This document shows positions 8,352 through 45,970 of a stretch of DNA of 64,000 nucleotides, in pieces. The stretch is taken from the NCBI GenBank assembly GCA_025594325.1, contig JANHCV010000006.1:1364001-1428000 (forward strand). The letters are read 5' to 3'. How positions within the stretch are numbered: the stretch's first letter is position 1; each line of letters begins with the position of its first letter. A model generated the notes under the pieces. That model saw only the letters and a program-made list of their open reading frames with translations. It was not told the origin of the DNA and searched no databases. Origin of the DNA: Blastocladiella emersonii ATCC 22665 (taxonomy: Eukaryota; Fungi; Blastocladiomycota). The translations under genes and the position numbers were made by a program.

Positions 8352-8384
8352 TGTCTCGCACATCACATGATTGATCGTCGCGTC
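8352..8384 (-). repeat. Tripartite motif copy 1 (degenerate)
   Basis: Minus strand reads GACGCGAC-GATCAA-TCATGTG-ATGT-GCGAGACA. Confidence 0.65.
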
Positions 8385-8695
8385 CCCTTCCACCCGCCCG
8401 GTCTGCTTCAGTTTGAACGTGAGCTCCGTGCTGGAAAGCGTCGAGCCCATCGAACGTTTGACCAAGCAGCTCATTGGACGAGAGTGCGTGCAGGTTGCAT
8501 TCGGGAGCAAGCCAGTCACGGGTGAGAGACAAATTCGTTCGTGCGCCGACGCATATATTGAGAAAGCGTGTGTGCGTATGCGTCTTCGGCATCCCCGTGG
8601 CATGTATTGAACCGCATTGGATAAAGCCCGGCCGCACCCCCATCGGTTGATCGAGTCTACCTCGCTTACGATATCATTTGCGCCATTTCCATTTG

Positions 8696-9319
8696 ATGGA
8701 AGAGACCCACAAGAGCACGCTGGACGAGATGATTGCTCACGACCAGGTTGAGGCAGTCCCTGAACCTGGCTGGACTGTTGTTGCTGAAGTGGACGAGGAG
8801 CCTGAGCTCACCCGCGCCAATACGAGCTCCTCGACCAAGAAGCGGAAATGGCATCGCCGCATCGTCAAGTCCGGTGCGAGAGCGAAAGATCTGACTCGCA
8901 AACGCTTCAAGTCCCCGTGGTCCAGGGTTGTCCACCAAAACATGACCAGGTGGGCCGACATCGTCAAACATAACCAGGACGTGCTTCATGACGCTCTGAT
9001 TGTGCTCCACGAACAGTTCATAAAACATGTTAAGGACCATCGGGCGCTGGCTGCGGACCACCAAACGCTGGCTGCGGACCACCAAACGCTGGCCGCGGAC
9101 CACCAAACGCTGGCTGCGGGCCACCAAACGCTGGCCGCGGACCATCAAGAGCTGGCTGCAAGTTGCCAGGAAAACCACGGACCTCAGGTCTTTACTGTCT
9201 CGCAGGAGAGTCTTGAGCGGCTTTTGAAGATGGTCGTACTTTATGTCCTCTTGCCAACCTTGTTTATTTCCTTCTCCATTGTGACGGCAATTGTCGCCAA
9301 AAATAAACGAAATGCGTGA
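8696..9319 (+). CDS. Orphan coiled-coil protein with C-terminal TM helix (tail-anchored); paralog of the hAT-split gene
   Basis: 207 aa from ATG 8696; six heptads (T/A)LAADHQ; TM LLKMVVLYVLLPTLFISFSIVTAIVA then KNKRNA; shares RKRFKSPWSRVV with the split gene. Confidence 0.7.
   Translation: MEETHKSTLDEMIAHDQVEAVPEPGWTVVAEVDEEPELTRANTSSSTKKRKWHRRIVKSGARAKDLTRKRFKSPWSRVVHQNMTRWADIVKHNQDVLHDALIVLHEQFIKHVKDHRALAADHQTLAADHQTLAADHQTLAAGHQTLAADHQELAASCQENHGPQVFTVSQESLERLLKMVVLYVLLPTLFISFSIVTAIVAKNKRNA
9044..9170 (+). repeat. 21-bp coding tandem repeat x6 (heptad repeat)
   Basis: Unit CGCTGGCTGCGGACCACCAAA repeated near-perfectly five times plus one degenerate copy. Confidence 0.95.
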
Positions 9320-9524
9320 ATGAGTACTTGACCTTGATACGGGTGGGTGGCCTGCTCCCTGGGCATCGTCTGTGGGGAGCTACTCCAAGAGGTGTCGTTT
9401 TTTTGCCCTTAAAAAGGGGCTACAGAGCTTGGAAGCTTCGTTGATTTGTTAGAACAATTTAGATGAACAGGAATAGACGCGCTTTGAGCATCGAGGACCA
9501 TACGAGCTTGTAAGGCGTTGTGGA

Positions 9525-9563
9525 GACGCGTCAATAAATCACGTGAGAGGCGCAAGACACTTT
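9525..9563 (+). repeat. Tripartite motif copy 2
   Basis: GACGCGTC-AATAAA-TCACGTG-AGAGGC-GCAAGACACTTT. Confidence 0.85.
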
Positions 9564-9644
9564 GTCGCTTGTCTACGCCTCCGTCGCCACGGTGCGCGCT
9601 CAAGTACCGTCGTGCCCACCCACCTCCCATTTACTGTGCTCCTA

Positions 9645-9887
9645 TCACGATGCCACCGCTCGTTCCACTGTTCGCCTTGGTGAGAACGAAAGACCCTGCG
9701 GCCACGGCAAATCATTGCCCACGCCAAGCCAGTCTTGGACACGTAGGCGTGCTTGAATGGACTCAATCTCCGTCATGTCGGCCCGAGTCTTCCTGGCGGG
9801 CGCGTCCGTCGGCGGAATCTCGCCATGAAACAGACCGGCGACGACGCTGATGAGGAAAGCAACCTGGAGCCACTGGAAGTAGTTCAT
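9645..9887 (-). CDS. Small (80-aa) orphan protein with N-terminal signal peptide/TM
   Basis: MNYFQWLQVAFLISVVAGLFHGE... followed by a coherent charged segment (DMTEIESIQARLRVQDWLG); short, so it may be spurious. Confidence 0.4.
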   Translation of the reverse strand: MNYFQWLQVAFLISVVAGLFHGEIPPTDAPARKTRADMTEIESIQARLRVQDWLGVGNDLPWPQGLSFSPRRTVERAVAS

Positions 9888-10141
9888 GGTGTCGATGCAG
9901 GGAGTTACGTGTGCCGGTTTCGGATCGCAGGGGCGGGGGCGAAGTGAGCACGGAAGCGGCAGACGCTTGCGCGCACAACGCGACGCGTCGCGTCCTTGGG
10001 ACTCACCACTCCCGCTTACCACCCGACCGGCGGTCATCACCCTCGTTGCTTTGATCGTGATTCCGCTGTCGCATGTATTCTTGGGCGACGCTACGGAAGG
10101 TGGAGGGCTGGAAACCCTCTCTTTAGCGGGGGAAACCAGAC

Positions 10142-10268
10142 CAGGGGGACTCCGAATAGACGGGTGAAGCCGAAGTGAACCGCCTTGAACCGCCGTGAAC
10201 CCGCCGTGAACCCGCTGTGAAGCCCAAGTCAAGTCGCGTCAAGCCGCGCGAAACCGCCGTGAAACCAC
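10142..10268 (+). repeat. Cluster of GTGAACC(C)GCC-like short repeats after CAGGGGG; possible orphan DNA-transposon end
   Basis: About 8 variants of GTGAA(C/G/A)CCGCC in ~105 bp; no matching inverted end found in the window. Confidence 0.45.
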
Positions 10269-11649
10269 GGATCCAGAGTCACGTGACGTTCAACTCGGGC
10301 CGCGCCGCCCGCTTGAGCACGCGCCGATCCACCCCTGCTGCGCCTGCACATGAATGTCTCGAGCAGCCACTACCTGCAATGCACTCGGGAGGCTCTGATG
10401 TACACGTTGGTGGGTCGGATGAATCGAATAGTGTCCCTCGGGGCAAACGGGTCGGCGGCAGCATGCTGCACGGCGCTGCGCCCCCCGTTGATGTATCCAA
10501 ACTTCGCTGGTTGTCTTTGCCATGACTGAGCGCACAAGATGATTCAGGTAGAATTGGGTTTTGAGCTGGCCCAGAACCCACGTCGCAACGCATCGCGGCC
10601 CAACCATGCGCGGCATGGCGTTGGCTCACTTTTGATCCCATTCAGCGACTCCCGTGAGCCGTGAGCCCCGATCTATGTTGCTGTCTATTCGCGAGACAGA
10701 TTTCTGGCGGCTCAGCGCGACACGGTGCATGGTTACGCGCCCTCTAGTGCCACCACTTCCGCCAATTCTTCGCTGTATGTTTTCCAAAGAATCCGGAGGC
10801 CTGTTTTGTATCGACAGTCTTTACCGTTACGATGCCCAGCGGCCAACGTAGATGTTCGGAGCGGCGCACCTCGCTGTCCAACGCCTTGCCAACATGCAAA
10901 TCAGTCCTTGAGCTTTAAAGGCGCTACTCGTCTCTCCTCTGTAATCTTCAGCTTGATTCCATGTCGTGGTGGCACCAGGGCGCGGCTTGCTCACTTCTTG
11001 CACGAGGCGCCGTCCCGCATACACAACTTGACGTGCCCTAATTCTCCGCCGGGTACTGTAACTGATCGTTTTCGACTTGCTTTCCGCACTCGTGTTCTCC
11101 AACTCGGCTTTTTTTAGCTGCAGCGCGAGTACAAGCGCAGCGGCAACGCTCACGCGCTCTTCCTCTTGCTGGCCAACCTCGTCGTCGTCAAGGACGTGCA
11201 GCAGATTTCCGTGCCCTCAGTCAGCGACAAAGCACAAGCGGCTTGCGTCGCGCACTACGACGCCACGGTCGTAAAAACACGCACGTTCGTCACCGCCGCC
11301 AATGCCATGTGAATTCGCAGGAAGCTCGTGTCTGCCCCGCGCCAGCTGCTGGCGCTGACGGCGATGCAGCCGCTACTCGTTCTCCGAGAGCCGATGCCAG
11401 CCGTGGTCCGCGACTACTACCACGTGAACTACGAGCACAGCATTTTCAACGGCCTTGGTCTTGTCCCGCCAGACGCGTCGCGCCACTCCGCGTGACTGGC
11501 GCGTACTTTGACACGGACGCGCTTCGTGTGCCCCACGTAGCGCAGATCAGCACTCTGGCTGATGGTGCAGCGCACGCCGAGCGCCGCAGTGGTGGTAGCA
11601 TGTCGGCGACAAGAACGAGGACCGCCATGACAATTGCGGGCCGCTGCTC

Positions 11650-13300
11650 AAGCCCAAGTTTGCCATCGCCGTACTGGTTCTTCTTTGGCCTGATCCCGGC
11701 CGTGTTCGTCTGCCTCACATCTGTGGAGGAGGCGCCCGTCGCGCTGTACCAGGCCATCGCCATGCTTGAGGTCGTAATGGGCAGCGGCAGTCTCTCGCTC
11801 TGCTCTCACTTCATCATCTAGGACGGCCATCTGCATCTCGCGGACCTCGTGCTCCCCGACATGACCGCCGCGTAGCAGTTTCGCGTCGTCTTCATCCCGC
11901 CCTTCACCCCGAACCAGCAGGTGCTCTCGCGCGCAAGTTTCCTAAAGCATGCGCTGACGTCGCCATTGACACGGAGCACGTCCCCGCTCGGGCCGCCAAT
12001 CTCGCAAGTGTTGAGGAGACGGACGACGTCGTTGCGACCCGCATCCTGCAGCCCGCCACCGCGGGGCTCAACGAGCTCAATCTCGTCGGCGAGGCGGTCA
12101 ACCGCTTTCGCCACGGCGTTTTGGTCACGGTCACGGCCATGGTCGCAGCCACCGCCAATCCTGTTCCCTCCTCCACGTCGTCCACGGACGCCGCCGCCGC
12201 CGCTGGACCAGCTCATGCCCATACGACGATAGCGAGGCGATCCACCGCGTCGCGCACCCGCTCGAAATCGACTATTTCGGAACGCACCACGATACGGTCG
12301 GCTCGTTTGACAAATTGGACGTTTCGCGTTCGTGGCGAGAGAGAGAGAGAGCGGGCCGGCTCAAGCGGCAGGTCGAGGGGCGCCGACGCGTGTGAAGAGC
12401 AGCGCCCAGATCTTGCACCCTCACCCACACACGCATCCACCCGCTCGTGCAGCCGACAGCGAGGACGACAACGACGACCCTGCTGATTTTGCTCTCGGTC
12501 ATGAAAGTGGGGAGCGCCGCGACGCCCGGCATCGCGACCGTGAGGAGGAAGGTGAGGATGAGCAGCAACAGCAGCGCCATGGCCACGCCGTCGCAGCCGC
12601 TGAGGATCGCCAAAACGCGCGCGTGGTCGTCGACCCCGTGCCGCTCGAGGTGCACGGCACTGCACCGAGCCCAGCGGAAAGACATGGAAAAGGAGATGGT
12701 GGAGCTGGCGATGAAGGTAATGGTGGGAAGAGCGGCGACGTTCCGCTGGTCAACGAGGCGTACGCGGTTCGCCAATTCGGTCAGTACCTGCACCTTTACA
12801 AGGAACTCTCGCTCGCTGGTTCCTTCCCGCGCGACTCTTTCCGTGGGGATTCTGCGGTTGCAACTCGGAACTCGACCAGCGCTACCAGGCCTCCTCGGCC
12901 GAGGCGCACTGCGAGCACCTGCTCCACCTCAGCGATTCGCAGCGCGTCGGGTTCATCCTGTTCGCCTTCGACCACGTGCGCACGCAGCGCCTGACGCAGA
13001 GCGTCCGCCTGTGCGTGCGGAGCCTCCTGAACACGCGGTCGCGGCCGCAACCATCTCCCAGGAGGAGCTCCTCGCGGCGTACGATGTGTGCGCCAAGCAG
13101 CAGCTCGCCGCGTAGCGTCCAGAAGCTCGACGTGGCCAACGTGCAGGCGTCGTCGCCGCTGCGGCCTGATCAGTTGCAGCACGACACGGCGTCGACTCCC
13201 GCGGCCAGCACCGACCGTGGTCGCGTTGCGAATGAGGGTCCGCCGCCGTGCCCTGGTCCGCCACCAAGTTTGCGAGGACCGCGTGTTGTTGACACGATTT
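11650..13300 (+). pseudogene. Degenerate protein-coding relic of unknown origin
   Basis: High-GC3 coding-like segments (YWFFFGLIPAVF...HFII*DGHLHL...TAA*QFRVVFIPPF; VRQFGQYLHLYKEL; HCEHLLHL...FDHVRTQRL; ISQEELLAAYDVCAK) broken by in-frame TAG codons and frameshifts. Confidence 0.4.
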
Positions 13301-14067: not shown

Positions 14068-14106
14068 GACGCGTCGATCAATCACGTGAGCCTTGCGAGA
14101 CACTTT
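14068..14106 (+). repeat. Tripartite motif copy 3
   Basis: GACGCGTC-GATCAA-TCACGTG-AGCCTT-GCGAGACACTTT. Confidence 0.9.
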
Positions 14107-14935
14107 CGACTCTCAAGCTGCAGCGGGTCCCTACTCGCTGAAATGCACTCTCTTGCTGCCAATCGAGCACGGAACTAGTTTCAACTTAATTAACACGTTT
14201 ATGTACATTGTAGTAAACTAGCACGCCAAATACCAGAACAAGTAGAGCACCTGCGAACAAGGTGCGATTAGTGTACCGTTCGATAGTCTGAGCAGCAGCC
14301 TCAGGGGCCGTGCTTTTGCTGCAGCTGCAGCTGCAGCTACGGTCTGACTTGGCCATTGCAGCCAGCGCCAGCATATACCCGCGCTGTTCATCAAGCTGGG
14401 ATTGGAGCGCAAGTGCAGCGCGTCGCAGCTGGTTCACGTTTCGGCTGATAACATTGGAACACGGGGACTTGAAGGGTTTTCGGTTCGGCTTTCTTGCTGT
14501 CACGTACGACTTGAGGCGAACTTTCCGTGGCTGTCGCACGTTTGTCGAGATGTCGCCAATGCGATTATCCTCGTGCCCGTAATCCTCGTGCCCCTTTCCC
14601 GCGTTATAGATGTAGTATTGAGGCTCCGGATTGGTTATCGTTCGAGTTGCGGCGCTGGAGAGAACGTTAGACTCGGTCAGGGTGTTGTTTGCCTTGATTT
14701 CTGTCCCGCGAAAATGGTCCTCGGCTAGCTTGTGGTAGAGGTCTCCATGGATCGTGTGGCTTGGCTTGGTTTGGATCTGGATCCTGTGGATCAGTGGGAG
14801 TTCACCGCCCCCCTCCCGTAAAATCTAACCCCCATCTATGAATACATGACTTGATGCATTAAGGATGATATTCGCGGGAGAATCGACGGGCGGGGTCAAA
14901 ATATGTAGATGTGCCCGTCCTTGCGCTCGCCCTGC

Positions 14936-17900
14936 TCACGCATCGCCGCGGAGCTCCATCTCCTCGATCTCGCCCTCGCCCTCGTCGTCCTCCTCGGCCT
15001 CGGTCATGCTGGTGTGTCGCATGTTCTCGTAGAGAGGCCCCATCTCGATCCCGAGGAACTCGGCGTGCTCCAGGAACGGCTTGAGGAGGACAATCGACTC
15101 GATCAGGTCGTCCTTGAGCTTGCCGCGGCGGGAGGAGACGATGCGACCCGAACGGCTGAAGAGCTACACGCGCGAGCGCAGCACGGTCAGTTTCGCACGC
15201 GAGGACGGTGTGCGTGCAGCGCGTGCGGGCGGCGCGCGCGGGCGGCGCGTGTGGGCGGCGCGTGTGGGCGGCGCGTGTGGGCGGCGCGTGTGGGCGGCGT
15301 GGGAGTGGATCGTACCCGCTCGCTTGAGACCGACGACGCTAGTATACAGAGATACCGACGCGCCAGACGCGCGATGGTCGGGAACTTCTCCTCGTTGGCG
15401 CGCCAGAAGGCGAACGTCGCGTTCTCGACCTGGTCGATCTGGCCGTCCGAGATCTGCTGCGCGAGGCTCTCGACCGTGCTCTCGTAGTACTGCAGCTCGC
15501 GCGCGCAGGCGCTCACGGGGTGCCCGCCAGACGCGTCATGCGCAGGTGCCTGCACCGACGGCGGGAACGCGCCGCGAATGTTCGCGGCGTTGCTGAACGA
15601 CGGTTTACTTGAAACCACAGGCGCCGAAGTCGTAGCATCAGCAGGTTTCCCCTCCATCTCCTCCAGTACGCTACACGGCGCAGCTCCGACGTCAGTGATC
15701 CTTGACGCGGAGAACGGTCGCGATGAGTACCGCGCGCGCAGAACCTGGACAGCGTGGTTCACCTCGACTTCGGGAGTGCCACAGTGCTCGCGGGGCATGT
15801 ACGCAAGGGTCTTGAGGCCGCCCTCGTACGGGTCGAGGAAGAAACAAACGGCGGCATTGTGCTGGATGGTGCCCCAGTACGCCATCAGTTTCGCGTACAT
15901 CAAACGTGCCGCTTCCGTGAGATCGGGCGAGTACGACTCGTCGCCTATCGAGGCGCGAAGCTCGCCGGCGAGCTGGAGATAAATAGTAGCCGCGTGCGAC
16001 ATGGTGACGTAGCGCTCGCCGGACACGACCGTCGTGGCTACGCGCGAGTACTCGTCAGTCCTCCAAAAACAAGGCCGCGCGAAAGAGACGCACCGTCCTG
16101 GAACGGTCGAAGCAAGCCTATGACCTGTGCAACCGTGTCCCAATCGGGGGAAGAAATGGGATCGAACCGCTCAAGCGAGATGAGCTCGTCGACGCGTCCG
16201 CGCTGCCTGAAGAAGACTTCGAGCAGCCGCAAGGTGCTGCCCCATCGGATTTCGATGGCCTTGGGCGGAAGCGTCGCGGAAACCTCGTTCACGATGGCTT
16301 TAAAGTCAGCTAGAACCTTGGGCGAGTTCCGGATCTTAGTGCCCAGCTTGTGGAAGAGCTCAAGGAGTCCGTGAAGCGGGCTATGCTTGCCGAATCCGGC
16401 CTGGACGACCAAGTGTAAGCAGTGCGCGACGCAGCTGTTCCCAAGCTGGACGGGCGAGTTCCCGTTCTCGGCCAACATTCCCTCGAGTTTCTCGATCGCA
16501 GCGGTGTTGTTGCTCGCATTGTCGAGGGTGATGCCAATGACGTGGTCGATAAGTCCGTACTGGCGCATGGTGTCGAACAGGCTCCTGGCAATCAAGTCGG
16601 CCGTGTGAGGCGACGGCGCGGGCAAGAAGGCCAGCGGAAGCGCGATGAGATTCCAGTTGCTGAGAATCGTGTGTAGCGTGATGGCCATGTAGGACCGATG
16701 CCCGTGGGTCGAGGTCCAAATGTCCGTCGTTAGGGCAACAGTCTCGCCGACCCGGCCACGGGCGTTCGCGGTCACAAACTTGTTCACAAGCGTGAAAAGA
16801 GCACAGACCCAGCGGCGTAGGGTTGGTGGTGAAGGGATCGGGAAGCCAGGACACGCGTTGCGCATGAAAAAGTGGAAGGCTTCCGTCTCGACGAACGTGA
16901 GCGGATACGCGTCGTTAACGAGAAGTCCAACGAGCCCACCTCGAATGTTAGGAAAGTTCGGAACCGGCGCAGCCGCTGGTTCAGTGCTAGCAGCCGTGGC
17001 CCCAGCGGCAGCAGCGTTTTGCGCTTTCAAGGTGAGATTTTCGGTATGCACGCGCCTCAAGTGCTTGGTGAGATTGAATGAGCCGGACGGGTTGACCTTG
17101 CCAGTGGCGTCAATGTTTCCAATCTTGTAGTCGATGTCACAGCTGTCATAGTTGCATCGCGCGCGGACCTCGCGGACCTCGTCGCGCTCGGAGATGTAGA
17201 GCGAGAACCGTTCGTACAAGGCTCGGTTGTTCGCACCTCGGAGGAAAAGCTCGACCGGATCTTCCACAGCCGTGCCAGCAGTCACGGCCGAAATCACGCC
17301 TTCGACAGTCGCCACCTCGCTCGCAACGTCGCTCGAGGCATCCAAGTCGGGAGAGATTTCGCCCGTCGAGATGGCGGAAGCAGCAGCGGTAGTCGACGCC
17401 AAAGCCGCGGCGATAGAGGGCGAGGCCGCCGAGGCACCAGCGGAGGTCCCGGAAGCGCGAGGCGAGGACGCGGCGGGAATTGCGCCCATGGGCGGCAAGA
17501 AACCGGCCAAAGCGTTCCCGTGTCCGACCTTTTGTGCGTGGCGGCGAGGCGCAGTCCGAGGTTCCGGAGGAGCGGGCGTGACGAGGCGTCGTTTCTGCGC
17601 GGGCGGACCATTCTCATCTGCAGGTGGCTCGACGCGTCGTTTGTCCGGCTTACGAGGGGCTGCGGCAGCAGAGGAAGAAGAAGCGAGCGCTGCACCGTGC
17701 ACCGTGCCTTGAGGCGAAGCGAGGGGAGGCGAAGTGGCAGAAGACGCGCTCGAGGGAGCGGTTCCCGCGGTCGCCGACGCGGCGGGGCCGCTCGAGTTAC
17801 GGCCGGTCGTGCGGGCCTTCGCGCCAGCAGGCTTCCCGGCATGCGAAGGTGCACGAGGAGCACTCCCAGCGGCACTCGAAGCATCGGGAGCGGCAGCGGG

Positions 17901-17975
17901 AGGGTCGCGCGATTGAGCGCCAGAGGCCCGAATGCGCGCGGACCGGCGCGCGGGTTCGGGCTGCATAGGATTCAT
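14936..17975 (-). CDS. hAT transposase with BED zinc finger (3 exons: 17975-16094, 16037-15316, 15163-14936)
   Basis: BED finger (ARCNYDSC...NLTKHLRRVH), LTTDIWTS, ITLDNASNN, CVAHCLHL, RWGSTL, FLDP, FWR..E.KFPTIARLARRYLCILASSVSSER|LFS; both GT-AG introns keep the frame open. Confidence 0.95.
15227..15300 (+). repeat. 13-bp minisatellite (GGGCGGCGCGTGT) inside transposase intron 2
   Basis: Four perfect copies at 15240-15291 plus degenerate flanking copies. Confidence 0.9.
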
Positions 17976-18439
17976 GTTGAGGGCTTAGAATGATGATTGC
18001 ATTCAGTGTTGCTTCATGGAGACCAACTTCTCGACGAGTGGAGGAGGGGGGAAGAAATCCGGCGCGTCACAGCGATCCACAGCGATCCACAGCGATCCAA
18101 GCCACACGACGCGTCTGGATTTCCGGCAAGCCGCGAAAAATCCATGGAGACCTCTAGCTTGTGGTACTGCGTGGGCATTTTGGTCAAGCTTGGGACTGCA
18201 CATTCGAGAGTGAATGAAGGAAGTGGTGTACTTTCAAGTGACAAGGGGAGGGGGAAGGAGACCGGACGGTTTTAACAGGGAGTCGGTTCCGTGCTTGAAA
18301 CAGATGCCAAATGCACATGCGCACTCAAGTTTTGACCGGCGGTCATTAGTTCATTTTGAACGAGGGAGAGCATGTCAGTGAGTGCACACATAGGATGTAT
18401 GCAGCCGCCATCCGTTGCGGCCCTGCGGCGCTCGCTGCG

Positions 18440-18480
18440 GACGCGTCGATCTATCACGTGACAGCTGCGAGACACTTTTT
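18440..18480 (+). repeat. Tripartite motif copy 4
   Basis: GACGCGTC-GATCTA-TCACGTG-ACAGCT-GCGAGACACTTTTT. Confidence 0.9.
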
Positions 18481-18554
18481 GATCTCGCCCGCCGACGCGT
18501 CTGCCTGGCGCTCAACACGAAAAACGTGATTCAAGCAAATTAAATTCTTCATCA

Positions 18555-19958
18555 TTACATAAACGCGGCGTTGAAGCGACCCTGCTCGTTGAGCGGGTGA
18601 GCCGACTGCTCGAGCGGGAGGAACGACACGTTCACGGGGACCAAATAATCCGGCTGCGACGGGCCCGTCGACGATGGGGGCGGAGGCGCGTGTTCAGGTC
18701 GATGCGGCAGCGCGAAAGAGGGTTTCGCAGTGGAGAGCGTCTTGTTGCCCCTGCGAGTGCGCTTGTTCGCAGGAGGTGCAGTTGACGACGCTGACGCTTC
18801 GTTGCGAGCGCGGCGGAGATGAAAGCACTCGTCGGTCGCATGGTTGAGAGCGTTCCGGTTCTTTGGTTCGGGAAGCCGGATGCAGTGAGAGCAAGGAGGA
18901 CGCGCGCTCGCATCGGTACCTGGGTATTCCACGGATTTGGCTGCCGCGACAAAAGTTGGAGCAGCTGCAGCCAAAGCTGGTGCTTCCTTACGAGCACGGC
19001 GGAGGCGCATGCAATCGTTGGTCGCATGATTACAAGAGTTTTGCTTTTTTGGTTCGGGTAGCAGAATGCAGTGCGAGCAAGGGGGACGCGGGCCCGGACC
19101 GGTGCTCGATTGGTCAACGGTCTCGGAATGGAGCCGCTTCTTGCTACTGCGCGAGTGGGGGAAGCAGAGTCCCGGGTGCCGAGCGATCATCAAGTCCGCT
19201 GAGTCGTCATTGAAGTGATCTTGGCCGAATTTCTCGGCCAGATCGGGCGCGTGGGTCGCAACGGCATGTAAGAAGTGGCCCTTCACAATCATTTCGAGCT
19301 GGTGCGCGAGTGCAATATCGACGTCCGTAACAGGACCACTGACCGGTGCTGCGTCAGCTCGGTCCACAAACCGGCGCAGGAGCTGCTTGCTGCGAGCGAG
19401 GTAGCTCTCGAACGATTCACCCCGTGCGGGAGCGCTGCCAAAGAACTCGTAGCGCCACTTGATAAATTCAGGAGGCGCCATGGTGAAGTGGAGGAACAAC
19501 TCCTTGGCCTTGTCCATCGAGAAGGTATTGGGCGAAAGAATCAGGCCCGAGATGAACTGCCACAAGTCGGCGAGGACGTAGGGCTGCATGCGCGCAAAGC
19601 AGGCGGCGCCGTGAATACCGACCTTGTTGCATTCCTGCACAAAAGCGTCGAGAAAGACGAGCGGGTCATCGACGCGGTTGGGGCCGCCCGCGTGCAGCGA
19701 GGGCGTGCTGATCGAAAGCGCGACGGGGGCGGCGGAAGCGGTCGGCGAAGGCGGGTCAAGCGCGGCAAGCAGCTTCTTGGCCGAGAGAAACGAGTCGACG
19801 AGCTTATCCTGCGTGTCGCGAAGCTCCGCCGTTCGAACGTCGTCGCCAAACGCCGCCTCCTGCTCCCGCAAGTTGGCCTGGATCTGCTGCTTCCAGTGTT
19901 CGACGATGCGCTGGGCCGAGTCGTACACCGAAGCGTCTGAATGACCAGGGGGCAACAT
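18555..19958 (-). CDS. Stand-alone retrotransposon Gag-like protein with two C-x2-C-x13-H-x4-C knuckles
   Basis: 467-aa intact ORF; capsid-like DPLVFLDAFVQEC...F...GESFESYLAR...L; duplicated PPCSHCI.LPEPK..N..NHAT..C..LRRAR; no pol or LTR nearby. Confidence 0.65.
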   Translation of the reverse strand: MLPPGHSDASVYDSAQRIVEHWKQQIQANLREQEAAFGDDVRTAELRDTQDKLVDSFLSAKKLLAALDPPSPTASAAPVALSISTPSLHAGGPNRVDDPLVFLDAFVQECNKVGIHGAACFARMQPYVLADLWQFISGLILSPNTFSMDKAKELFLHFTMAPPEFIKWRYEFFGSAPARGESFESYLARSKQLLRRFVDRADAAPVSGPVTDVDIALAHQLEMIVKGHFLHAVATHAPDLAEKFGQDHFNDDSADLMIARHPGLCFPHSRSSKKRLHSETVDQSSTGPGPRPPCSHCILLPEPKKQNSCNHATNDCMRLRRARKEAPALAAAAPTFVAAAKSVEYPGTDASARPPCSHCIRLPEPKNRNALNHATDECFHLRRARNEASASSTAPPANKRTRRGNKTLSTAKPSFALPHRPEHAPPPPSSTGPSQPDYLVPVNVSFLPLEQSAHPLNEQGRFNAAFM

Positions 19959-20466
19959 GGTGTTGTATGGTCGAAGAATGCGCGAGTGTGGGCGAGTTGC
20001 CGGCAGCGGTGTGAGACGGTGCTGATGGTGTGATGATACGAAAGCGGGCGTTGCGCCAAGTTACATGCAAGTTTCATGCGGCCTCAAAGCCTGGTTGCTG
20101 GAGAGACAGGGCGGGACCGAGGTCGGCGAACTCGACTGCTTACCAATTGATCAGACCATTCGTTCGTCGCGTGACGCTCAGCCGATGACCATCACAATAG
20201 GCCGCTGCTCGTCTTTATACTCTTCAAGACGCGATATATTGCCGTAATAGCTGTACGATCAACGACCTTCTATATCGTTCCATTTGCCGGTAGCCCTGGC
20301 ACGAGGCGATAAGCTGCGGTTCAACCGGATGCTTGAAACGCGACGCGTCTCGCGCCTCCCGACCATGACAACTCCCTCCGTCCGCTTCAGGCCAAGAAGT
20401 AGGAATCTATCTCTTCACGATGATAGAAAAAACTCACGGACAACAAGCGAGCTCGGCGCCGAACCG

Positions 20467-28108: not shown

Positions 28109-30920
28109 ATGGAATCTTCGCCTGGCGGCATCCCGACCTGCTGCACTAGCGGCAGCTGCACCCGCAACGCCTCCTCCTCGCCGCCATCACCACCACCGAC
28201 GAGGAGAGACGCCGCCCCGCTCGCGCCGTCGCCTCGATCGACCCTAGCCCGTTCCTCGCTCCTCCATCATGGCGCGCCGGCGAGCGGCACCCCGCCAAGG
28301 AGTGCACCCAGCGCCTCGCACGGCGTTTCGCCTGCGCCCGCGCCCGCGCCCTCGCCCGCCGCCGCCGCCGCCACTCCTTCTGGACTCTCGTCGTCGGCGC
28401 CGTCAACCGCTACCTCTCTCCCTGCCCAAACCCGTTCCCCGCTGTCGTCCTCCTGCGGCGCTTCGTGCACTTCATCGTCGTCCGCGCCGCCCCCGTCGCC
28501 GGTGCCACCACGCCCGCGCCCGTCCTTCTTCCCCGCTGCTGCCGCCGCCGCGGCCGCTGCTGCTGCTTCCGCCACCACGGCGCCGCGCCCGCACACTCCA
28601 ACACCGTCTGCGTCTGCTGCCGCGGCTGCAACCGCCTCGGATCCCGCGTTCCTGGCGACTTCCGCCGACACGGCATCCATCCCGCCCGCGCACCAGTGGC
28701 CGCCCGAGCTCCGCGCCCGCGCCGTCGCCGCTGCCTGGCGCGCCTACTGGCGCCAGTTCCTCCTGCGCCTCTACTGGGCCTCGCGCGGCGACACGTTTGA
28801 CGCTGCCTCGCCCGCGACCGGCACGAGCACGCCCGGCGCGTTTGCGGTGACTGCTGCTGCTGCGCCGCCGCCGTCGTCCTCGTTTGCGACGACAGCGTCG
28901 CCGGCAGTCCGTCCGCGCGTCCGCGTTCCGTCGCACCTCGCGACCACGACCACTGCTTCGCCGACCACGAACGACACGCTGTCCGAGTCCGGCTCGTCCG
29001 CCAGCAGCTCGCGCGCGTCGTGGACCTCCTCAACCGCGTCCCTGGCCTCGCTAGCGGAGGAAGAAGCAGACGCCTCGACCGCGTGGGTCGACGACGCCCT
29101 CGCCGAGCTCAGTGCACCTCACCCACCGCCTCCCCCAACCAACGGCGCGCGGTCCGCGTCCGTCTTCACGCCGCCGTGGCACGCCGCGCCCGGCGCCCCG
29201 TCCGTGCACACGCACGCGCACGCATCCGAGTTCCCGTGGTGGCCCGGCCCGCTGCTCGCCGCGCTCCTGTTCCCGGCCTCGCGCGCGCTCGTGCGTGCGG
29301 TTGCCGCGGTCAGGTCGACCCTCGGCACCTCGCTCGCCGTCGCCCTGCTCGTGTCCAACGACCAGTGGCAGCCGTCCGCCCGCGCCGGGTTGATCCAGGC
29401 GTTGCGGTACGCTTTCACCTGGACTTGCAGGCCTTCGACCTGGTTCTGATATCCCCACGTGTAGCCGCGAAGCCCGCGAACACCGCGACGCGACCCGGCG
29501 CAGCGCACGCAAAGGCCGCCTCGCGCGCCGCCTCGCCGCCCTGCGCGCGCACGTCCAGTGGAAGCTCATGCCGCAGACCCTCGCCAACAGCCAGTACGCG
29601 GGTCTCGCCGAGGCCCTGACCGACGTCGTGGACGTGGAACCCGCGCCCGACCTCCGCGTCCCCGAGCCGCCGCTCGACGCGCCCGACCTCGACCGCATCC
29701 GCGTCGCCAGCCCGCTTCTCCACCGGAACGCGCCGTCGCCGCATCGACCTTCCAGCGTCGTGTCGGTCGCCGACTCGCTCGCGCTCTCGGCGCTCGTCTC
29801 TGCGCCCGCTAGCGTGTGCGACTCCTCCGACAGCCGGCCCGCGTCGCCCGCACCGTCGTTTGCGGGTACCGCGGTCGGGATGGGTGGGATCGCGCCGTCG
29901 CGACCCGTGTCGCCGTACCTGTATAACGAGATGGCCGAGTCGGTTTTGGGGGAGTCGGACCGGTTCCCTGCTCCCGAGATCACGGACCCCGTCTCGCTCC
30001 CACCGCGCGCGCCCGCCTCGGTGTACGCGGCGGCTGGGTCGCCGCGCCGCCTCTCGACGCTGTCCACGGCGTCCTCGTGGACTGCGTCGCGGGGTAGCGG
30101 CAGCGTGCTGAACCACCACTCGCACCATCATCACCACCATCGGCGCCGCCCCTCGCTCGCCGCCTCGGACGTGTCGGCGCTCCTCGACAACGCCACCGAG
30201 TGCGGCGCGTCAACCTGCGGCCCACCCACCACCACCGCCGCCACTCCCGCCGCGGCGCCGTCCGTGATCGCCGACTCGGCCATCGGGTCCTCGATCGCCG
30301 GCAAACGGCTCAGCTACAGCTACCCGCACCACCGTCGGCGCGGCAGCTCCGCGTCCGCGTACACGGCATGGAGCACCTCCGGCGCCGTCGGCCGCACCCC
30401 GCCGCCGTCGCCCATCGACGAGCACGAGCCCGCGCCCGACCCGACCGAGTCCCTGTGGCGCTGGCTCGCCGGGCTCTCGCCCGCGCCCGAGCTCAGTGCT
30501 GCCGCCGCCGCTGTCGCGGCCGGGTACCCGATGATCCCCACCGCGGCCGCGGACCATGTGCATGACCCACCGCCCGCGTGGTGGACGTCTACGACGCGCG
30601 ACCCCGTCCTCGCCGCCGAGGCGTTGGTGGCGGAGAGTACCGCGGCCAAGATCGCGCGCAACCAGATCGCCGCGTTCAACGCCGCCGGGTTCCCGCAGTC
30701 GATGTGCGAGGAGGATGCGCCCGCGCGGCCCGCGAGCGCACCGGCTGTGTCGCCCGCGGCTCAGCATCGCCGCCGCCGCCGCCGACGCCGCGTCTCGGGC
30801 ATGTGGTGGGCGGGCGACGAGCACGACGATCTCGACCTCGATCTCGGCGGCGGTGGCGTGTCGGACGAGGACGCCGGGTACGTCAGCGCCGACTATAGCG
30901 CCGTCGGTAAGGACGAGGTC

Positions 30921-30953
<33 letters not shown>

Positions 30954-32084
30954 TCCGCGTCGTTCCGGTGGTCAACGGACGCGTACCGTCCGCCGCCCAC
31001 CCCGACGACGCCCGCGTCAGCCGAGGCCAAGGTCTCGCCGATGCACCGCCACCGCACAGACAGCGGGTTCTCGACGCCGTCGGGCGTCACGTCACCGAGC
31101 CCGCGGCCCGCGTCGTCGGCGCACCACGCACACGCGCACGCGCACGCGCACGTTCATTTCGATCGCGACCCCGTCATCCGCGCCGACCCGCACGCCGCTG
31201 CCGCCGCCGCCGCGCTCGGCGACGAGGAGGAGGTGGATCTGCGGTCGGTGCGGTCCGACGACGACGAGGAAGTCGACCTCGACTTCGGCGACGCCGACCA
31301 CGCCATGGACGCTGCAGGCAGCGAGTGCGGCGACGGCGACGAGGACTACCTCTCTTCAAGCGACGACGACGAGGGCGAGGTCAAGGTGTACGGTCCTGCG
31401 ACGCCGCTCCCACTGCCCGTCGCGCAGCAGTCCGTCCCGGGGTACCGCCGCCGCACCACGTCGTGGTCGACCAGCTCGTTCCGCGGCGGCCTCGACACGG
31501 TCCTCGAGGACGCGCTCGCGGTGCCGCCCAGCTCGCTCCACGCGGTCCACGGCGGCAGCAGTGGGATGATGGAGCTCGGCCCGCACGGGATCCCGGGACC
31601 GATCACGCTCGACCACCACGCGCCGTCGGCGTCGCAGCAGTACCAGTCGCCCGCCATGGGCGCCGCGGCTTCGGCTTCGGCGAATACCACCAAGGCCACG
31701 GCGACCGCGGCCGCCGCCGCCGCCGTCGCGGCCTTCTTCTCGAACCCGCAGGAGTGGGCCGCCGCTGCGGCCGCCATGGGTTTCACGCCTCCCGCTGCCG
31801 CTCCCGCATCTGAGCCCGCTGCCGCTGCCGCGACCGTCGAGGTGGCGCCGCCCGTCGAGGCCGAGACGCTCGCAGACGTGATGAAGGAGGCGCGCACGGC
31901 GCTCGCGGGCGCGCGCAAGGCGTGCGAGGCCGAGCTCGCCGGCACGTTTGCGCTCGGGCTGCGGCTCGGCAAGTGCGAGCGGCTCGCGGCCGAGCTCGCG
32001 CGCGACGCCGAGACGGCCGAGGCTGAGCTCGGTAAGGTCGACGCGTGGCTCGCCGAGTTTCGCACGTTGATCGAGGAGCTGTGA
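28109..32084 (+). CDS. Large (~1300-aa) low-complexity Ser/Pro/Ala-rich protein with C-terminal coiled coil (exons 28109-29406, 29465-32084)
   Basis: A 58-nt GT-AG intron (29407-29464) joins the 27800 and 29568 ORFs in frame (QALR|REAREH...WKLMPQTL). The start is uncertain and no domain was recognised. Confidence 0.6.
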
Positions 32085-32232
32085 TGTGAAGAGTAGAAGT
32101 GGATGGATGATGAGAGTATATAGCCTACATAGACCTGATTCAAGCGGTTGATGGTTCGTACGGGAGGTAGCCGTGAGACCAGGGGTAGTGGGACGAGCGG
32201 TGAAAAAGTGTCTCGCGGTGAGACGCGTGGTG

Positions 32233-32271
32233 AAAAGTGTCTCGCGTTCGGCACGTGACCCGCGACGCGTC
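32233..32271 (-). repeat. Tripartite motif copy 5, with an extra GCGAGACACTTTTT half-copy at 32203-32216
   Basis: Minus strand GACGCGTC-GCGGG-TCACGTG-CCGAAC-GCGAGACACTTTT. Confidence 0.85.
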
Positions 32272-32402
32272 TCGCACCTGTGAGGCTGACCGCACTCTCC
32301 ACATGCGGGCGCGGCACATGCGGCTGCAGCAGCCGTCGCACACGCATGCACTCGTATGAACCCTGCCGCTACTGACTCTCTCACAATCCCAGTTCCCTCA
32401 TC

Positions 32403-33047
32403 ATGTCCAAGCAGCCCCCTTCCCAGTTTCGGGCCCACACGGCCCCTGGTATCCAACCGCTGTTGCCGAACCCACGCATATCGGCTGCTGCACACTCAGA
32501 TACAACCAAGAAGCATGGAGCAGTGCGTCCGCCTCGACCTATCCGTTCTGGTGCAGCTCAGCAACGAGTAGCCATACAGCCAGATTGTCTTGTCACCGTC
32601 AAAGCTGCAGACCTTGCGCTAGTTCAAAAGCTTGTTGACAAGCTGGCGAAACGCATTCCGAACAGCCAGTCGTCTGTTCCTGCCAGTATTTCACTCGAGG
32701 GATTTACCCAGCTTGTGAAGTCGCTTGATCGCCTAGTGTCTGCCATTGTGACCATGCCTGAAAACACCCCCCAGACACCGACGGCAAGACCCACGTCTGA
32801 TACTTGTGCGTCTAGCGGAGTTAGGCCGGACGTTCCGCGTCAAGTTTCCAACCCCGAACGACCCAGCAGCGCTGCAGAATGCGCGCCTCAAGTCTCAACA
32901 ACTCAACACACATGGACGATCATGGACATTGATCAAATCACCACACGCAAATGGGGCTACTTTAATTCGGCCAAACGCATTCGTGAAGCGCAGGAGATGA
33001 ATGCAAAAATTAAGTACCTTGAGTCGTTTGAAGGCTTTAACAAGTAA
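32403..33047 (+). CDS. Low-GC orphan protein (214 aa)
   Basis: Intact ORF with ATCATG start and AATAAA shortly after the stop; codon use differs from the host genes; no domain recognised. Confidence 0.6.
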   Translation: MSKQPPSQFRAHTAPGIQPLLPNPRISAAAHSDTTKKHGAVRPPRPIRSGAAQQRVAIQPDCLVTVKAADLALVQKLVDKLAKRIPNSQSSVPASISLEGFTQLVKSLDRLVSAIVTMPENTPQTPTARPTSDTCASSGVRPDVPRQVSNPERPSSAAECAPQVSTTQHTWTIMDIDQITTRKWGYFNSAKRIREAQEMNAKIKYLESFEGFNK

Positions 33048-34628
33048 TGCTCAAAGAATAAATATCGCGCGTGTAGTTTCAAAGTTAAGACGTGTACAGG
33101 TAACGGCCTTCATGGGCGAAAAAAAAAAGATCCCTGCGACAACCAAGCGTCAACGCGAGCTCAAGCCGTGTTGATTTGTTAATTGGCATGGCTGTCGTTT
33201 GACCCCTGCTGAACCACCGCCCGCCCGGATAGCAGGTTCTTGACGCCATTAGGCATCACGTCGCCAAGTTCGCGGCCCGCATCGTCGTTGCACCACGGGC
33301 AGTGGCACTTCATTTGAGTCGCCACGCGTCTCGCACTTAGCGAGTGCGGGCGGTTGGACGGCAATAGGGCTCGCTCGCTCGCCGCACTCTCCCTCTCGCT
33401 GGTTCCTGGCCGCCCGATAAGATCAGCTGTGGTGTGATGCGGGGTATGAAGAGGATCTCGTGCCGACCTTGCGCGTGCCCAGGTCCTGACTCGCGCGCAG
33501 AGCGTGTGGTCGTTCAGGCACTCCGTGCGCTGTTGTATCAAATGTGAGGCGATTGCTTAGACTGTAACTGCATTTGCTAATTGTACTAGCAACTTCTTCG
33601 CTCGAGGGCAGCGGGAGTTGAGCGCCATCGACTCGTCTCTGGAGCCACCATCATGGCCATCAGGCTGGCCATCACCAGCTCGGCCGCGGCGCTACTCCTA
33701 CCGCGACCGCTCCGTACCGTTCTCCGGGTCTGGATCCATCCAGTAAGCCTTAGTCATCTCGACCAGCTGACCGCGATCGAGAGGTTCACGGCCAAGGTCG
33801 CAAGCTGTTCGTTCGTTCCTCACGACCACTCTTGTCGCAAAGTTGCAGCTGCTCGTCGAGGACAACAAGAAGCTGGCTAGGCGCCGTGAACGCGACCCCT
33901 TCCGCCGTTATTCCTGTAACCGAGTACGTTTGATGGACGTGTTTGACGCGTCCGATGGTGCGAGGAGCGCACTTCGCGCGGAGGCCGATCGATGAAGCTT
34001 GACCACAGCGTGGTCAACTAGACCTCGGCTAGGTCGATGACCAAGATGACTCTTCGGCGGTCTGACTACGTCTGCTGCCAACTACCGATCCCCTGCTGCC
34101 AGCCTCGCAGCGATTCCCGCCTATCCAGGCCTACGTCAACGTTGACGGCTGTCTGGATCCCCCGCGACGATGAGCAAGTCGGGAAGCTCGTTGCCAGAAT
34201 GGATGGGAGTCGGAGAGGGTGAGGAGGAACGCGAGGGAGACCTCGGCGTCGGGGTCGATCGCTCGTGGTCAACGACGCGTCGGCGGACGCGAGAGAGGCG
34301 GCGCCAAGGGCAGAGTGCTGCATGAGGTGGACGCGGACAACGGATGAACTGGGGACGAGGAAGCGAGTGAACCCGTTGGGGCCCCGCTTGAGCTTCCGCT
34401 CTCTCCTGCAGCCGGTCGTCGTCGTCATCATCTTACAACGTAGCATCACCATGTATGTCGCCCGCTCCTTCTTGTTCACCGCGGCCAGCTCGGCTCGGGA
34501 GAGAACAAGGGCCGGCCCGGCGGCGCGCCCGGCCGTGTGGCGCCTCGCCCTGCAAGCACACGCGCCCGGCGTCCCGTCTTGCTTGTTGCTCACCGCGCTC
34601 CCTCTCTCCTCCCTCTCGACCAACTTGA

Positions 34629-35837: not shown

Positions 35838-36151
35838 GCCCCGCTCGTCGGCCGCCCCCGCCCGTCATCTGACTGTGTACATTCTCCTTCTGCCCACCTT
35901 CATCATCCACGACTTGCACAACCACTCCCCCTCGGTATTCTTTGTTCACAACTGCGTCATACTATACACATTCGGATTGCACACGTGAGACGTGGGAGAT
36001 GACCGACGCAAGCGAGAACAAGCAAGCGGTCGCCGGTCGCCGTCCAGGTTGCCGTCCCTCCCACGCGCGCGCGTCGCCGACCGCCTTCTCTCTCTCGTCC
36101 CTCACACCGTCGAGCCAAACAACCACCAGCGACTTGGTGCAAGCCCCTGCA

Positions 36152-39100
36152 ATGAAGCGCAAAGACACTCGCGAGCACTTTGATCCCAACAAGCCCGGCG
36201 CCGGCTCGGACGACGATGTACGCATGCCTGCGATCTGCCCGCTGACTGCTTCCTCGCCGCGATCTGACGTTCGTCTCCCTCTCCTACCAACAGTCCGATG
36301 GCGGCGACAACAACAGCGGGATGAAGCAGAACCCGGACCCGTCGGCTGCACCGCGCAAGAAGCTCCGCCCCAAGGCCACGGTACGCTTCGCGCGCGACGC
36401 GACTTGCCGCCGTATAGCACGCGGCTGACCCGCCTCAAACTGTGTAGACTGCGTCGACGTCCGCTCGTCCGAGCACCTTTGGGACCGGCTTCTCCCTCAC
36501 CGCCTCGGCTGCCGCTGCCCCTGCGCCGGCGTTCTCGTTCAACCAGCAGAGCTCGACCTCGACCTCGGCGTCCGCTCCGTCTATCCCCACCTTCTCGTTC
36601 GGCGCTCCATCTTCGACCTCGGCACCCGCGACCTCGGCGCCCGTCTTCGCTGGGTTCGACTTCAGCTCGGTGCCCTCGAGCTCGGGCTCCGGCTCGGGTT
36701 CAGCGCCCGCAAGCTCGGCGCCCGCCCTGTCGATCAACCTCCCGTCCACAGCCGACATCATCACCTCGGCCGCCACGGGCGCCGCCGCCGACGCGACGCC
36801 GCTCTCGCCCGTGTCGCCGACCTCGCCGACCTCGGCCACGTCGGACTCTTCGGATGATTCGGACTCGGAGGAGATCACGCCCGACGCGCCCGCACCCGCC
36901 GCCGCCGATGCCGCTGCGCCGGTGAACTGGGCCGAGCGTCACGCCGTCAACGCGTCGTTCGCCAGCGCCGTGTCCGCGGCGTTCGCCGCCGACCCGTGGG
37001 CCGACCTCTCGGACATGTGCCGCCAGTACGCCGTGTACACGGGCACGGCGCTGCCCGCCGGTCAGTCGGAAGCTGACGCCAAGGCGGCGCGGGCCGCGGC
37101 CAAGAAGGTCCGGGAGAAGGCGGCCAAGAAGCTCAAGAGGGACCGGGCCAAGGCCAACCGGCGGGCCGCCGCCGAGGCCGCCGCGGCCAACCGGCGGTAC
37201 GGCGCGCTCGTGCGGCAGTCGTTGACCATGGGCGCCGGCGTCGGGCCCATGTTCCAGTCCCAGCTGCCGCCCTTCTCGTTCGGGTCGCTCAGCGCCGCCG
37301 GTCCCACCTCGCCCAACGCTAACACCAACCCCGCCCCTACCGGCGGCTTCTCCTTTGCCGCGCCCGCGTTCCCGGCCAGCCCCGCCGCCGCGCAGACGCC
37401 GGCGACTACCACTGCCGGCCCCACCGCCGCTGCTGCTGCGCCTTCGGCCTCCCCGGCCGCCAGCGCCGCGGGCTTTGCGTTCAACTTCGGCCCGCCCTCG
37501 TCCTCGGGGCCGCTCAGCTTTGGCAGCCCTCCGCCGCCCGGCGCGCTGCCGTCCTTCTCGTTTGGCACGGGCCCGTCCACGAGCGCCCCGCGCAACCCGC
37601 CGATCGCGACGACCTTTGATGGGTTCGGGCTGTCGACCAACCCGACCGGCCTGTTCGGGTACCGCGGCCGCTCCGCCGAACCTGCGCCTGCCCCCGCTCC
37701 CGCGCCAGCCACCAACTCGTCGCTCCCGGCCGACTCGCCCTTCACCCCCGCCCCGCCGCCGCCGCCGCCGGTCCCCGCCCCGGTCTTCCTGTTCGGCCTC
37801 CGCCGCAAGCAGAAGACGATCGCGGCCGCCGACGCCGCCGAGGCCGCCGCGCGCCCGCCCCCGGGGCCCACGCCACCCGCTGTGCCCAAGGGCGGGTTCC
37901 ATTTCGGCACCGCGGCGCCCGAGGAGATCGCCGCCGGCGCCGAGGCTGTCGGCCCGTTCCGCATCTCGACGCGCGACGACAAGAAGACCAAGCGGGCTAA
38001 GAAGGCCGCGGCCGCCGCCGCGGCGGCGGGGGCGACGTCCCCCGTCAAGTCCGAGCCGGGCACCGAGGCCGAAACGGAGCCTGAGGCCAAGGAGGAGTCG
38101 GGCGCTGAGACCGAGACCAAGCCCGAGTCGGCCGCGGCCGGCACCGCGCCGCCGCCGCCTCCGCCCGCGCTCTCGTTCGGCGCCATCCCGTCCTCGGGTG
38201 CGTCAACTTCGTCTGGCTTCTCGTTTGGCGCGTCCCCGTCGGCATTCTCGTTTGGCCAGTCGACGGCTTCAACGGCGCCCGCGCTCTCGTTTGGCGGAGC
38301 TCCTGCAGCCGCGCCGTCCCCGTCGGGCGGTGCTACGCCGGCCGGTACGTCGAGCGCTGCACCCGCCACGACGATGCCCGCGTTCTCGTTCACGTCCGCG
38401 GCTCTCGCGGCCGGTACTTCGAGCGCGGCTCCCTCCTCCACAACGGCCGCCTCGTTATCGTTCTCGGATCCCACGGCAGGACCCATGTTCTCGTTCACGT
38501 CCGCCGCTCCCGCGGCGACCGCGGCGGCGAACGAGACTTCGGGTACGGCTCCGTCGTCGACCTCGCCCGCCGCCGCCTCGACGAGTGCGATCCCGCCCAT
38601 GCCCAAGTTCTTCTCGGGCGACAAGCCGCAGCTGGCCTTCAAGTTCGACAAGGGCCCGGCCAAGGCGCCGCCCACCGCGGCCCCCGTCAAGTCGGAGCCT
38701 GCCGCCGCCGCCGCCACCACCACCAACGACGACGACGCGGACGAGCCGGCGCCCACCGAGGAGCCGTCCAAGACCTTCTCGATCCCGTCGGACGAGGCGT
38801 ACGTGTACGAGTGCCGCGGCAAGGTGCGCGACCGGCCCGCGGCGCAGCGCACGCCCGCGGCCGCCAACACGTGGCCGTCCCTCGGCGTCGGCAACTTTGC
38901 CGTGGTCCGGTGCACGTCGGGCGACCGGCCGGCGCGCGTCCTCGCGCGCGTCGGGTTCCTCGTCGACTCGGTGTTCATCAACGCCAGCGTCGCGGCCGTC
39001 CTCGTCGCCCGCGTCAGCGCCAAGTCCGCGTTCGTCACGGTCGTCGGCAGCGTCGCGCGCAGCTCGAAGCGCGCCGAGTTCGACGCGGTGCCCGAGGCGC

Positions 39101-39201
39101 AGCGCGGGTCGCCCGACCGCGAAATGTTCCTCGTCCAGTTCGCGGGCGCCGCGGAGCGCGATGCGTTTGTCACGGCGGTCGAGCAGGCCAAGCTGGGGTA
39201 G
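36152..39201 (+). CDS. NUP2: Nucleoporin Nup2/Nup50-like (N-terminal importin-alpha-binding motif, FSFG repeats, C-terminal Ran-binding domain); 3 exons
   Basis: MKRKDTRE...APRKKLRPK N-terminus; VNASF...DPWADLSDMCRQY central motif; many FSFG/FSF repeats; RanBD-like YECRGKV...WPSLGVGNF...ARVLAR; two short introns near 36218-36292 and 36381-36448. Confidence 0.8.
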
Positions 39202-39557
39202 GTGGGAGAGAGGAAGGGTAACGGTGAGTAGCTGTAGTGATAGCAATCAATACACTTTGCCAATTGCATATTTACTAGTTGCGACTATCGCGACTCAATC
39301 GTATTCAAGGCGGGACCAAAATTATCGCAGCGGAGACGAGCGACATGCCGAACTCCTCGAGCGACTCGTCCGTGAGAGCAGCGTGTCCGAGTCGGAGCTC
39401 CCACCCGTGCACGGTGTCGAGACTCGGAAGCCCTGCTTCGAGACGATGACCGACATCTCAGCGGCGATCTTAAGCGCCGGTCGCTCGAGCGCAGCTTGTT
39501 TGGCGGCAGGGCGTGATCGGGGAGCGAAAGCGGAAGCGTGGCCGCGAGCCGCGAGAC

Positions 39558-39591
39558 GTCTCGCACGCGTCACGTGTTTGATCGACGCGTC
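39558..39591 (-). repeat. Tripartite motif copy 6
   Basis: Minus strand GACGCGTC-GATCAA-ACACGTG-ACGCGT-GCGAGAC. Confidence 0.8.
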
Positions 39592-45708: not shown

Positions 45709-45970
45709 GGCAGCTGCGTGGGGGGTTAGGGGGAGAGAGAAGGGAGCGCGATGCAAAACGTGACGACTCGAGACTGAGTCGATCCTCTACGCAGGCTGAT
45801 CGACGCGTTCGCCGCTCGCCCCGGTGCGCTCTCATCCCGCCGCCCGCTCTCCCTCCCCTGCCCGACCTTCAGTAGCTCATGGGAGTGCATGGATCGCTGA
45901 GCAACTGGCCGCACAACATTGTATCATACCCCACGCATCCCACGTCAACCCCACACGCGCCGCCACCACC

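Follow-up and report, generated by a model that had tools for sequence, protein, structure and literature searches.

The question raised by this locus is what is served by a short three-part motif that recurs six times, amid otherwise unrelated DNA, in a stretch of 64,000 nucleotides of Blastocladiella emersonii ATCC 22665 (GCA_025594325.1, JANHCV010000006.1:1,364,001-1,428,000). This whole stretch is referred to here as the window, and all coordinates are window-based. The assembly of B. emersonii consists of 21 contigs with a total of 34.27 Mb (PMC9730499). The analyses described below revealed that the motif is real, non-random and selectively maintained. On balance, it is probably a composite transcription-factor site that acts as a promoter module for open reading frames (ORFs) which are unannotated and have no relatives.

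Structure and conservation of the motif

The full pattern, GACGCGTC-N6-TCACGTG-N6-GCGAGACACTTT, spans 39 bases and was matched on the forward strand at 9525, 14068 and 18440 with at most one mismatch, while 100 dinucleotide-preserving shuffles contained no match, so that none is expected by chance. A relaxed pattern added matches on the reverse strand at 32239-32271 and 39558-39591. The window contains three full matches and four relaxed ones, as compared to none in the shuffles. The sixth copy, which is degenerate, was recovered on the reverse strand (8351-8390) through alignment combined with a mismatch scan. An earlier reading made from the letters of the window without database searches (the sequence-only reading) had listed six copies, and all of them were present where it placed them, the one given at 8352 being now read as 8351.

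The motif is built of three blocks, namely an MCB-like (MluI cell-cycle box) palindrome, (GA)GACGCGTC, followed 7 bp on by the E-box TCACGTGA and a further 5 bp on by the word GCGAGAC(AC). The CACGTG core is found in five of the six copies and is replaced by CATGTG in the other one, and the full TCACGTGA with its flanking T occurs in three. Both GACGCGTC and TCACGTGA are self-palindromic, as is typical of words recognized by dimeric transcription factors, and the blocks are unlike each other. In the copy at 32233 the first spacer is 1 nt shorter, and in the copy at 8351 the third block lies 2 nt closer. A partial duplicate of the motif, composed of AAAAAGTGTCTCGC and GAGACGCGT, adjoins the copy at 32233 (positions 32203-32232).

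Across the six copies, 142 of the 150 block positions (95%) agreed with the column majority, and the first spacer, with the consensus GATCAA, agreed at 28 of 35 positions. The second spacer, in contrast, differs in every copy and agreed at 13 of 28 positions, which is the chance level for six sequences; the difference in conservation between the blocks and this spacer was highly significant (Fisher p = 4e-9). The 20-nt flanks were also at the chance level for six sequences (50-52% majority identity), and beyond approximately 45 bp nothing common to the copies was detected by alignment, repeat search or self-BLAST, in accordance with the unrelated flanks that had been reported. Blocks conserved at a fixed geometry around a random spacer indicate selection on the blocks, or their specific recognition, and the confinement of conservation to the blocks does not fit with recent copying or neutral decay.

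No Rfam family and no tRNA was matched at the motif, and folding of the copies as RNA or single-stranded DNA gave z-scores of -1.4 to +1.3, no better than those of shuffles and with no common structure. Exact motif matches numbered 0 in metagenome contigs and 0 in viral contigs, and in the literature no paper was found that pairs these words in a fungus or that describes a promoter motif of B. emersonii. The composite was also not found in 17 kb of Catenaria anguillulae and 24 kb of Allomyces macrogynus around CAND1, a sample that is too small to show absence.

Positions of the copies relative to neighbouring genes

The copies and the features discussed with them are presented in Table 1. When each copy was read from its GTCTCGC side to its GACGCGTC side, co-oriented ORFs followed three of the six, at +132 bp (orf214), +262 bp (TA2) and +306 bp (TA1). 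These ORFs had already been noticed in the sequence-only reading, and none of them is publicly annotated. In the opposite orientation, with the gene behind the ACTTT end, no credible ORFs were found.

Table 1. Motif copies, adjoining ORFs and one clustered promoter site in the window.
Feature	Position	Strand	Description	Left neighbour	Right neighbour	Spacer type
Copy 8351	8351-8390	-	GACGCGAC + CATGTG; third block 2 nt closer; without ACTTT	radical-SAM gene (-), annotated start 7482	TA1 (+), ATG 8696, 306 bp	divergent 5'-5'
Copy 9525	9525-9563	+	canonical, one mismatch (GCAAGAC)	TA1, stop 9319, 206 bp	orf80 (-), stop 9645, 82 bp	convergent
Copy 14068	14068-14106	+	canonical, perfect match	no credible ORF; annotated 73-aa gene end 13115	TA2 (-), stop 14186, 80 bp	convergent or no left gene
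Copy 18440	18440-18478	+	canonical, perfect match	TA2 (-), ATG 18178, 262 bp	gag-like gene (-), stop 18555, 77 bp	tandem
Copy 32233	32233-32271	-	variant, first spacer 1 nt shorter	annotated 1292-aa gene (+), stop 32084, 149 bp	orf214 (+), ATG 32403, 132 bp	tandem
Copy 39558	39558-39591	-	variant without ACTTT tail; third block forms palindrome GCGAGACGTCTCGC	annotated 968-aa gene (+), stop 39201, 357 bp	OPT (-), stop 39694, 103 bp	convergent
TA1	8696-9319	+	207-aa ORF with coiled coil and C-terminal membrane anchor; unannotated; inverted motif copies on both sides
TA2	14186-18178	-	divergent paralogue of TA1, split by hAT element 14736-18156; direct motif copies on both sides
orf80	9645-9887	-	80-aa ORF with hydrophobic N-terminus; unannotated; own GACGCGTC before ATG (site at 9982)
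gag-like ORF	18555-19958	-	467 aa as continuous ORF; annotated as 260-aa spliced model with identical start and stop
orf214	32403-33047	+	low-GC; unannotated; 132 bp behind copy 32233
Promoter cluster	62180-62238	+	TCACGTTG, three tandem GACGCGTC, then GTGTCTCGC; 72-130 bp before ATG 62310

A second regularity concerns the ends of genes. For five of the six copies the nearest stop codon is 77-149 bp away, and the three canonical ones lie 77, 80 and 82 bp past the stops of unrelated ORFs, all in one orientation and with unrelated intervening sequences. The chance of such a cluster was estimated at approximately 0.01-0.05 after allowing for choice, and the cluster depends on orf80 being real. 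The proximity of the copies to gene 3' ends, which the sequence-only reading had pointed out, is thus real, and it is left unexplained by a promoter reading alone.

The individual stop distances given earlier (72, 81, 79, 76, 148 and 356 bp) are arithmetically right, with three caveats on the ORFs involved. An ORF at 7896-8279 had been taken as the gene preceding the first copy; it begins with GTG, its coding score is strongly negative, it is not coding-like, and it sits in the divergent 5'-5' spacer by the radical-SAM gene. The gene that had been read as encoding 838 aa is, in the public annotation, a 1292-aa gene (28109-32084). The rule stated earlier, by which GTCTCGC always comes first behind the preceding ORF, cannot be applied unambiguously to the two convergent copies: the stop closest to the copy at 39558 is that of the OPT gene, located 103 bp away on the opposite strand, and at 9525 the end of TA1 is 206 bp off, again on the opposite strand. 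In the OPT gene, the last exon (39876-39697) extends the Pfam OPT profile at positions 597-619. The copies are distributed 1:2:3 or 1:3:2 over divergent, tandem and convergent spacers, and with six copies this is not distinguishable from random intergenic placement.

Unannotated ORFs beside the motif

TA1 and TA2 are 26% identical over 68 aa and have a common architecture consisting of a basic region with an FKSP[W/C]S patch, a coiled coil and a C-terminal membrane anchor. The DNA upstream of the two ORFs aligns at the motif only. The maintenance of a rare motif at the same place and in the same orientation in two old paralogues argues that the motif belongs to the gene unit. The coding status of TA1 and TA2 is based on their common frame and architecture; a codon-position test on the common patch showed no third-position excess. 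A word search for TA1 returned no relatives, and a profile of TA1 and TA2 compared with 1.84 billion representative proteins returned only spurious matches to the region of LAADHQT repeats. These repeats are encoded in TA1 by a 21-bp tandem repeat of five to six units (9034-9159), which draws spurious coiled-coil matches in profile searches.

Pfam showed nothing above threshold for TA1, TA2, orf80, orf214 and the gag-like ORF, and an exact look-up of ten proteins of the window, including the gag-like ORF and orf214, did not find them. The GenBank annotation of GCA_025594325.1 contains none of TA1, TA2, orf80, orf214 and the hAT transposase. The GC content at third codon positions (GC3) is approximately 0.9 in core genes and 0.5-0.7 in the ORFs of the 7.7-20.4 kb region and of a few other lower-GC stretches, and the annotation may systematically miss low-GC3 accessory ORFs. 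The gag-like locus contains an internal duplication of 163 nt (18772-18934 and 18958-19120; 72% identical).

A 41-aa ORF at 50259-50384 (+) is 47% identical to the N-terminus of orf214 and represents a truncated paralogue. Upstream of it no composite motif was found, only ACGCGTC at 49957; this absence is uninformative.

The single blocks in the window

Considered alone, GACGCGTC occurs 23 times in the window as compared to 6.9 expected occurrences, and its density is 4-fold higher in non-coding than in coding DNA (0.69/kb vs 0.17/kb). Neither of the other words is enriched on its own in the window, CACGTG occurring 22 times as compared to 30 expected and GCGAGAC showing no excess. Single GACGCGTC sites were located 95 bp before the ATG of orf80 and 133 bp before the ATG of the hAT transposase, and GACGCGTC is also present inside the hAT element. 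The start annotated for the CAF1B/HIR1-like WD40 gene is preceded, at approximately 95 bp, by the shorter word ACGCGT. The gene starting at ATG 62310, which encodes a signal-peptide, cadherin-like protein, is preceded at 91-114 bp by a triple GACGCGTC, with CACGTT distal and GTGTCTCGC proximal to it. The order of this cluster, E-box-like word distal and MCB proximal, is the same as in the composite, with a different spacing.

A fused word, GCGAGACGCGT(C), in which GCGAGAC overlaps the MCB, was observed at 20339-20353, 32264-32275 and 33324-33334, one of these occurrences being 384 bp upstream of the gag-like ATG. The word may be a motif of its own.

A composite site as a probable promoter module

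Taken together, the conserved blocks, their geometry and the co-oriented ORFs are consistent with a composite site that serves as a promoter module. We infer that the three-block composite is bound by sequence-specific proteins, the candidates being KilA-N/APSES-type factors for ACGCGT and basic helix-loop-helix (bHLH) factors for CACGTG. The fixed spacing suggests that the bound factors are in contact, and they may touch each other directly or form one complex. The motif would then work as an upstream activating module whose GACGCGTC end faces the regulated gene, and the unannotated ORFs behind it would be genes. Young, low-GC ORFs without relatives, here TA1, TA2 and orf214, would in this manner be put under one transcriptional programme. 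Copies without a downstream ORF might correspond to antisense or non-coding promoters, to promoters of lost genes, or to a second role at gene boundaries. MBF is known to bind ACGCGT, and zoosporic fungi possess the SBF/APSES family (PMC4862756).

Several observations weigh against this interpretation. The copies at 9525 and 39558 are situated in convergent spacers and are followed by no ORF, and the copy at 14068 has no ATG within 347 nt beyond its GACGCGTC side; two of these three are among the best conserved. No publicly annotated gene start is found within 350 bp of any copy, and the three ORFs proposed to be regulated are unannotated, have weak coding scores and are without relatives. In addition, five of the six copies are close to a stop codon, and the 77-82 bp between the canonical ones and a stop are tighter than any distance to a start. 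The sequence-only reading had offered a composite promoter and a recombination or insertion site as its two alternatives. The former is the better supported of the two, with the convergent copies and the 3'-end positions left unexplained by it.

Alternative explanations

The positions just mentioned would be explained by a boundary or roadblock role of the motif, alone or together with promoter activity. Proteins bound to such an element would stop or insulate transcription coming from the upstream gene, as Reb1-type roadblocks do, and may maintain a gap free of nucleosomes from which the next promoter profits as well. As the principal function of the motif this is unlikely, yet it deserves more weight than the explanations that follow. 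It would account for the five copies close to a stop codon and for the narrow spacing and single orientation of the canonical three, as well as for the two or three copies in convergent 3'-3' spacers with no obvious promoter target. CACGTG is, moreover, the word recognized in yeast by the general regulatory factor Cbf1. The element cannot be a general terminator, since most gene ends of the window are without the motif (approximately 30 genes vs six copies). The copy at 8351 is located in a divergent 5'-5' spacer, the tight cluster presupposes that orf80 is a real gene, the sequences between stop and motif have nothing in common, and the copies downstream of TA1 and TA2 are oppositely oriented. 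The copies at convergent gene ends suggest that the element may also be active at gene boundaries.

It is improbable that the motif is a functionless remnant of a dispersed repeat or of a transposon end. Such an origin would agree with the occurrence of GACGCGTC inside the hAT element and with a placement over spacer classes that is no different from random intergenic placement. Uniform decay or recent copying would, however, leave the opposite of what was observed, that is, conservation only in the three blocks with the inner 5-nt spacer randomised. The repeat search and self-BLAST also revealed no extended flanks, inverted ends or target duplications.

Still less credence is given to a portable unit that frames the ORFs without relatives and either mediates their excision, inversion or spread by recombination, or acts as a roving promoter or boundary module that seeds new genes by switching on the non-coding DNA beside it. 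Under that explanation, copies with no gene behind them would represent an unused or newly arrived state.

The least probable explanation, and a very doubtful one, is a site-specific recombination or insertion site that delimits mobile, cassette-like gene units, as the sequence-only reading had also proposed: a Pfam scan of 40 ORF pieces, confined to the window, detected no domain of a tyrosine or serine recombinase or of Crypton, DIRS or Starship type (only the hAT dimerisation domain and a TnpB-type zinc ribbon at 50.7 kb), each block is a palindrome in itself and not one of two inverted half-sites flanking a crossover spacer, the second spacer is not the same in any two copies, single-strand folds were no better than those of shuffles and contained no attC-like fold, and the copies have no target-site duplications and do not lie at the borders of the low-GC island. 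The linked tyrosine recombinase that the sequence-only reading proposed to look for was thus missing from the ORFs scanned, and its cassette-boundary alternative received no support. A small probability of recombination is kept alive by the arrangement of the four copies of the island, which enclose precisely the two TA paralogues: the copies on either side of TA1 are inverted, those on either side of TA2 direct. Recombination sites, too, are known to combine conserved blocks with spacers that are variable and yet fixed in length, and the copies with no gene behind them would also be compatible with recombination.

Other features of the window

The element that splits TA2 has inverted ends of 16 bp (TAGAGGTCTCCATGGA) and is flanked by a target duplication of 8 bp (CCACAAGC), and its identity as a hAT element was confirmed by the hAT dimerisation domain. 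The insertion is apparently recent. The transposase ORF (16038-17975) is not in the same frame as the dimerisation domain (15187-16143), and a word search returned no relatives of the transposase.

On the reverse strand, the region 50690-51130 matched Pfam PF07282 (Cas12f1-like TNB zinc ribbon; E=6e-10). It corresponds to an annotated 109-aa gene in a low-GC stretch and represents a TnpB/Fanzor-like remnant or gene. The CAF1B/HIR1-like WD40 gene forms a divergent pair with CAND1 (43989-49859), which is syntenic in B. emersonii and C. anguillulae, while in A. macrogynus the WD40 gene is located downstream of CAND1 instead. The CAND1 ORF of the window shows 100% identity with a B. emersonii ATCC 22665 protein.

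Comparison with known systems

To our knowledge, almost nothing has been established about the promoter grammar of Blastocladiomycota, which keep both animal-like and fungal transcription machinery. If the interpretation as a promoter module is correct, the combination of MCB, E-box and GCGAGAC would give access to an entire set of co-regulated young genes, could be employed in expression constructs in what is an emerging model for optogenetics, and would open a route to genes that the public annotation misses. A boundary role, if true, would be of wider interest for compact genomes.

Among the systems with which the motif can be compared, the integron attC site is similar in being a short conserved element between small, unrelated and mostly co-oriented ORFs, some copies being empty. 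It differs from the motif described here in that no integrase was found, the copies form no imperfect hairpin, the blocks are self-palindromic and the host is a eukaryote; copies also occur here between ordinary core genes. The roadblock terminators of yeast, of Reb1 and Rap1 type, are likewise situated shortly past stops, in front of the following gene where genes are in tandem, and also in convergent spacers, whereas the motif is present at a minority of gene ends only.

Fungal promoters in which MBF/APSES (KilA-N) factors read the MCB share with this locus the ACGCGT core and its enrichment in non-coding DNA. Single or clustered sites lie here approximately 90-300 bp before starts, and two or three of the composite copies have no ORF downstream. 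The site in B. emersonii differs from those promoters in that it is lengthened to GACGCGTC, is held at a fixed distance from both an E-box and a third word, and lies beside accessory ORFs without relatives and not beside known G1/S genes. The second block resembles the E-box of Cbf1/USF type, TCACGTGA, in its palindromic CACGTG with a T flank. Finally, although the partner words and the spacing are different, the motif resembles the composite sites of yeast, such as those of Cbf1-Met4-Met28 and of PAC with RRPE, in its fixed geometry relative to an adjacent element, and this geometry suggests cooperative binding.

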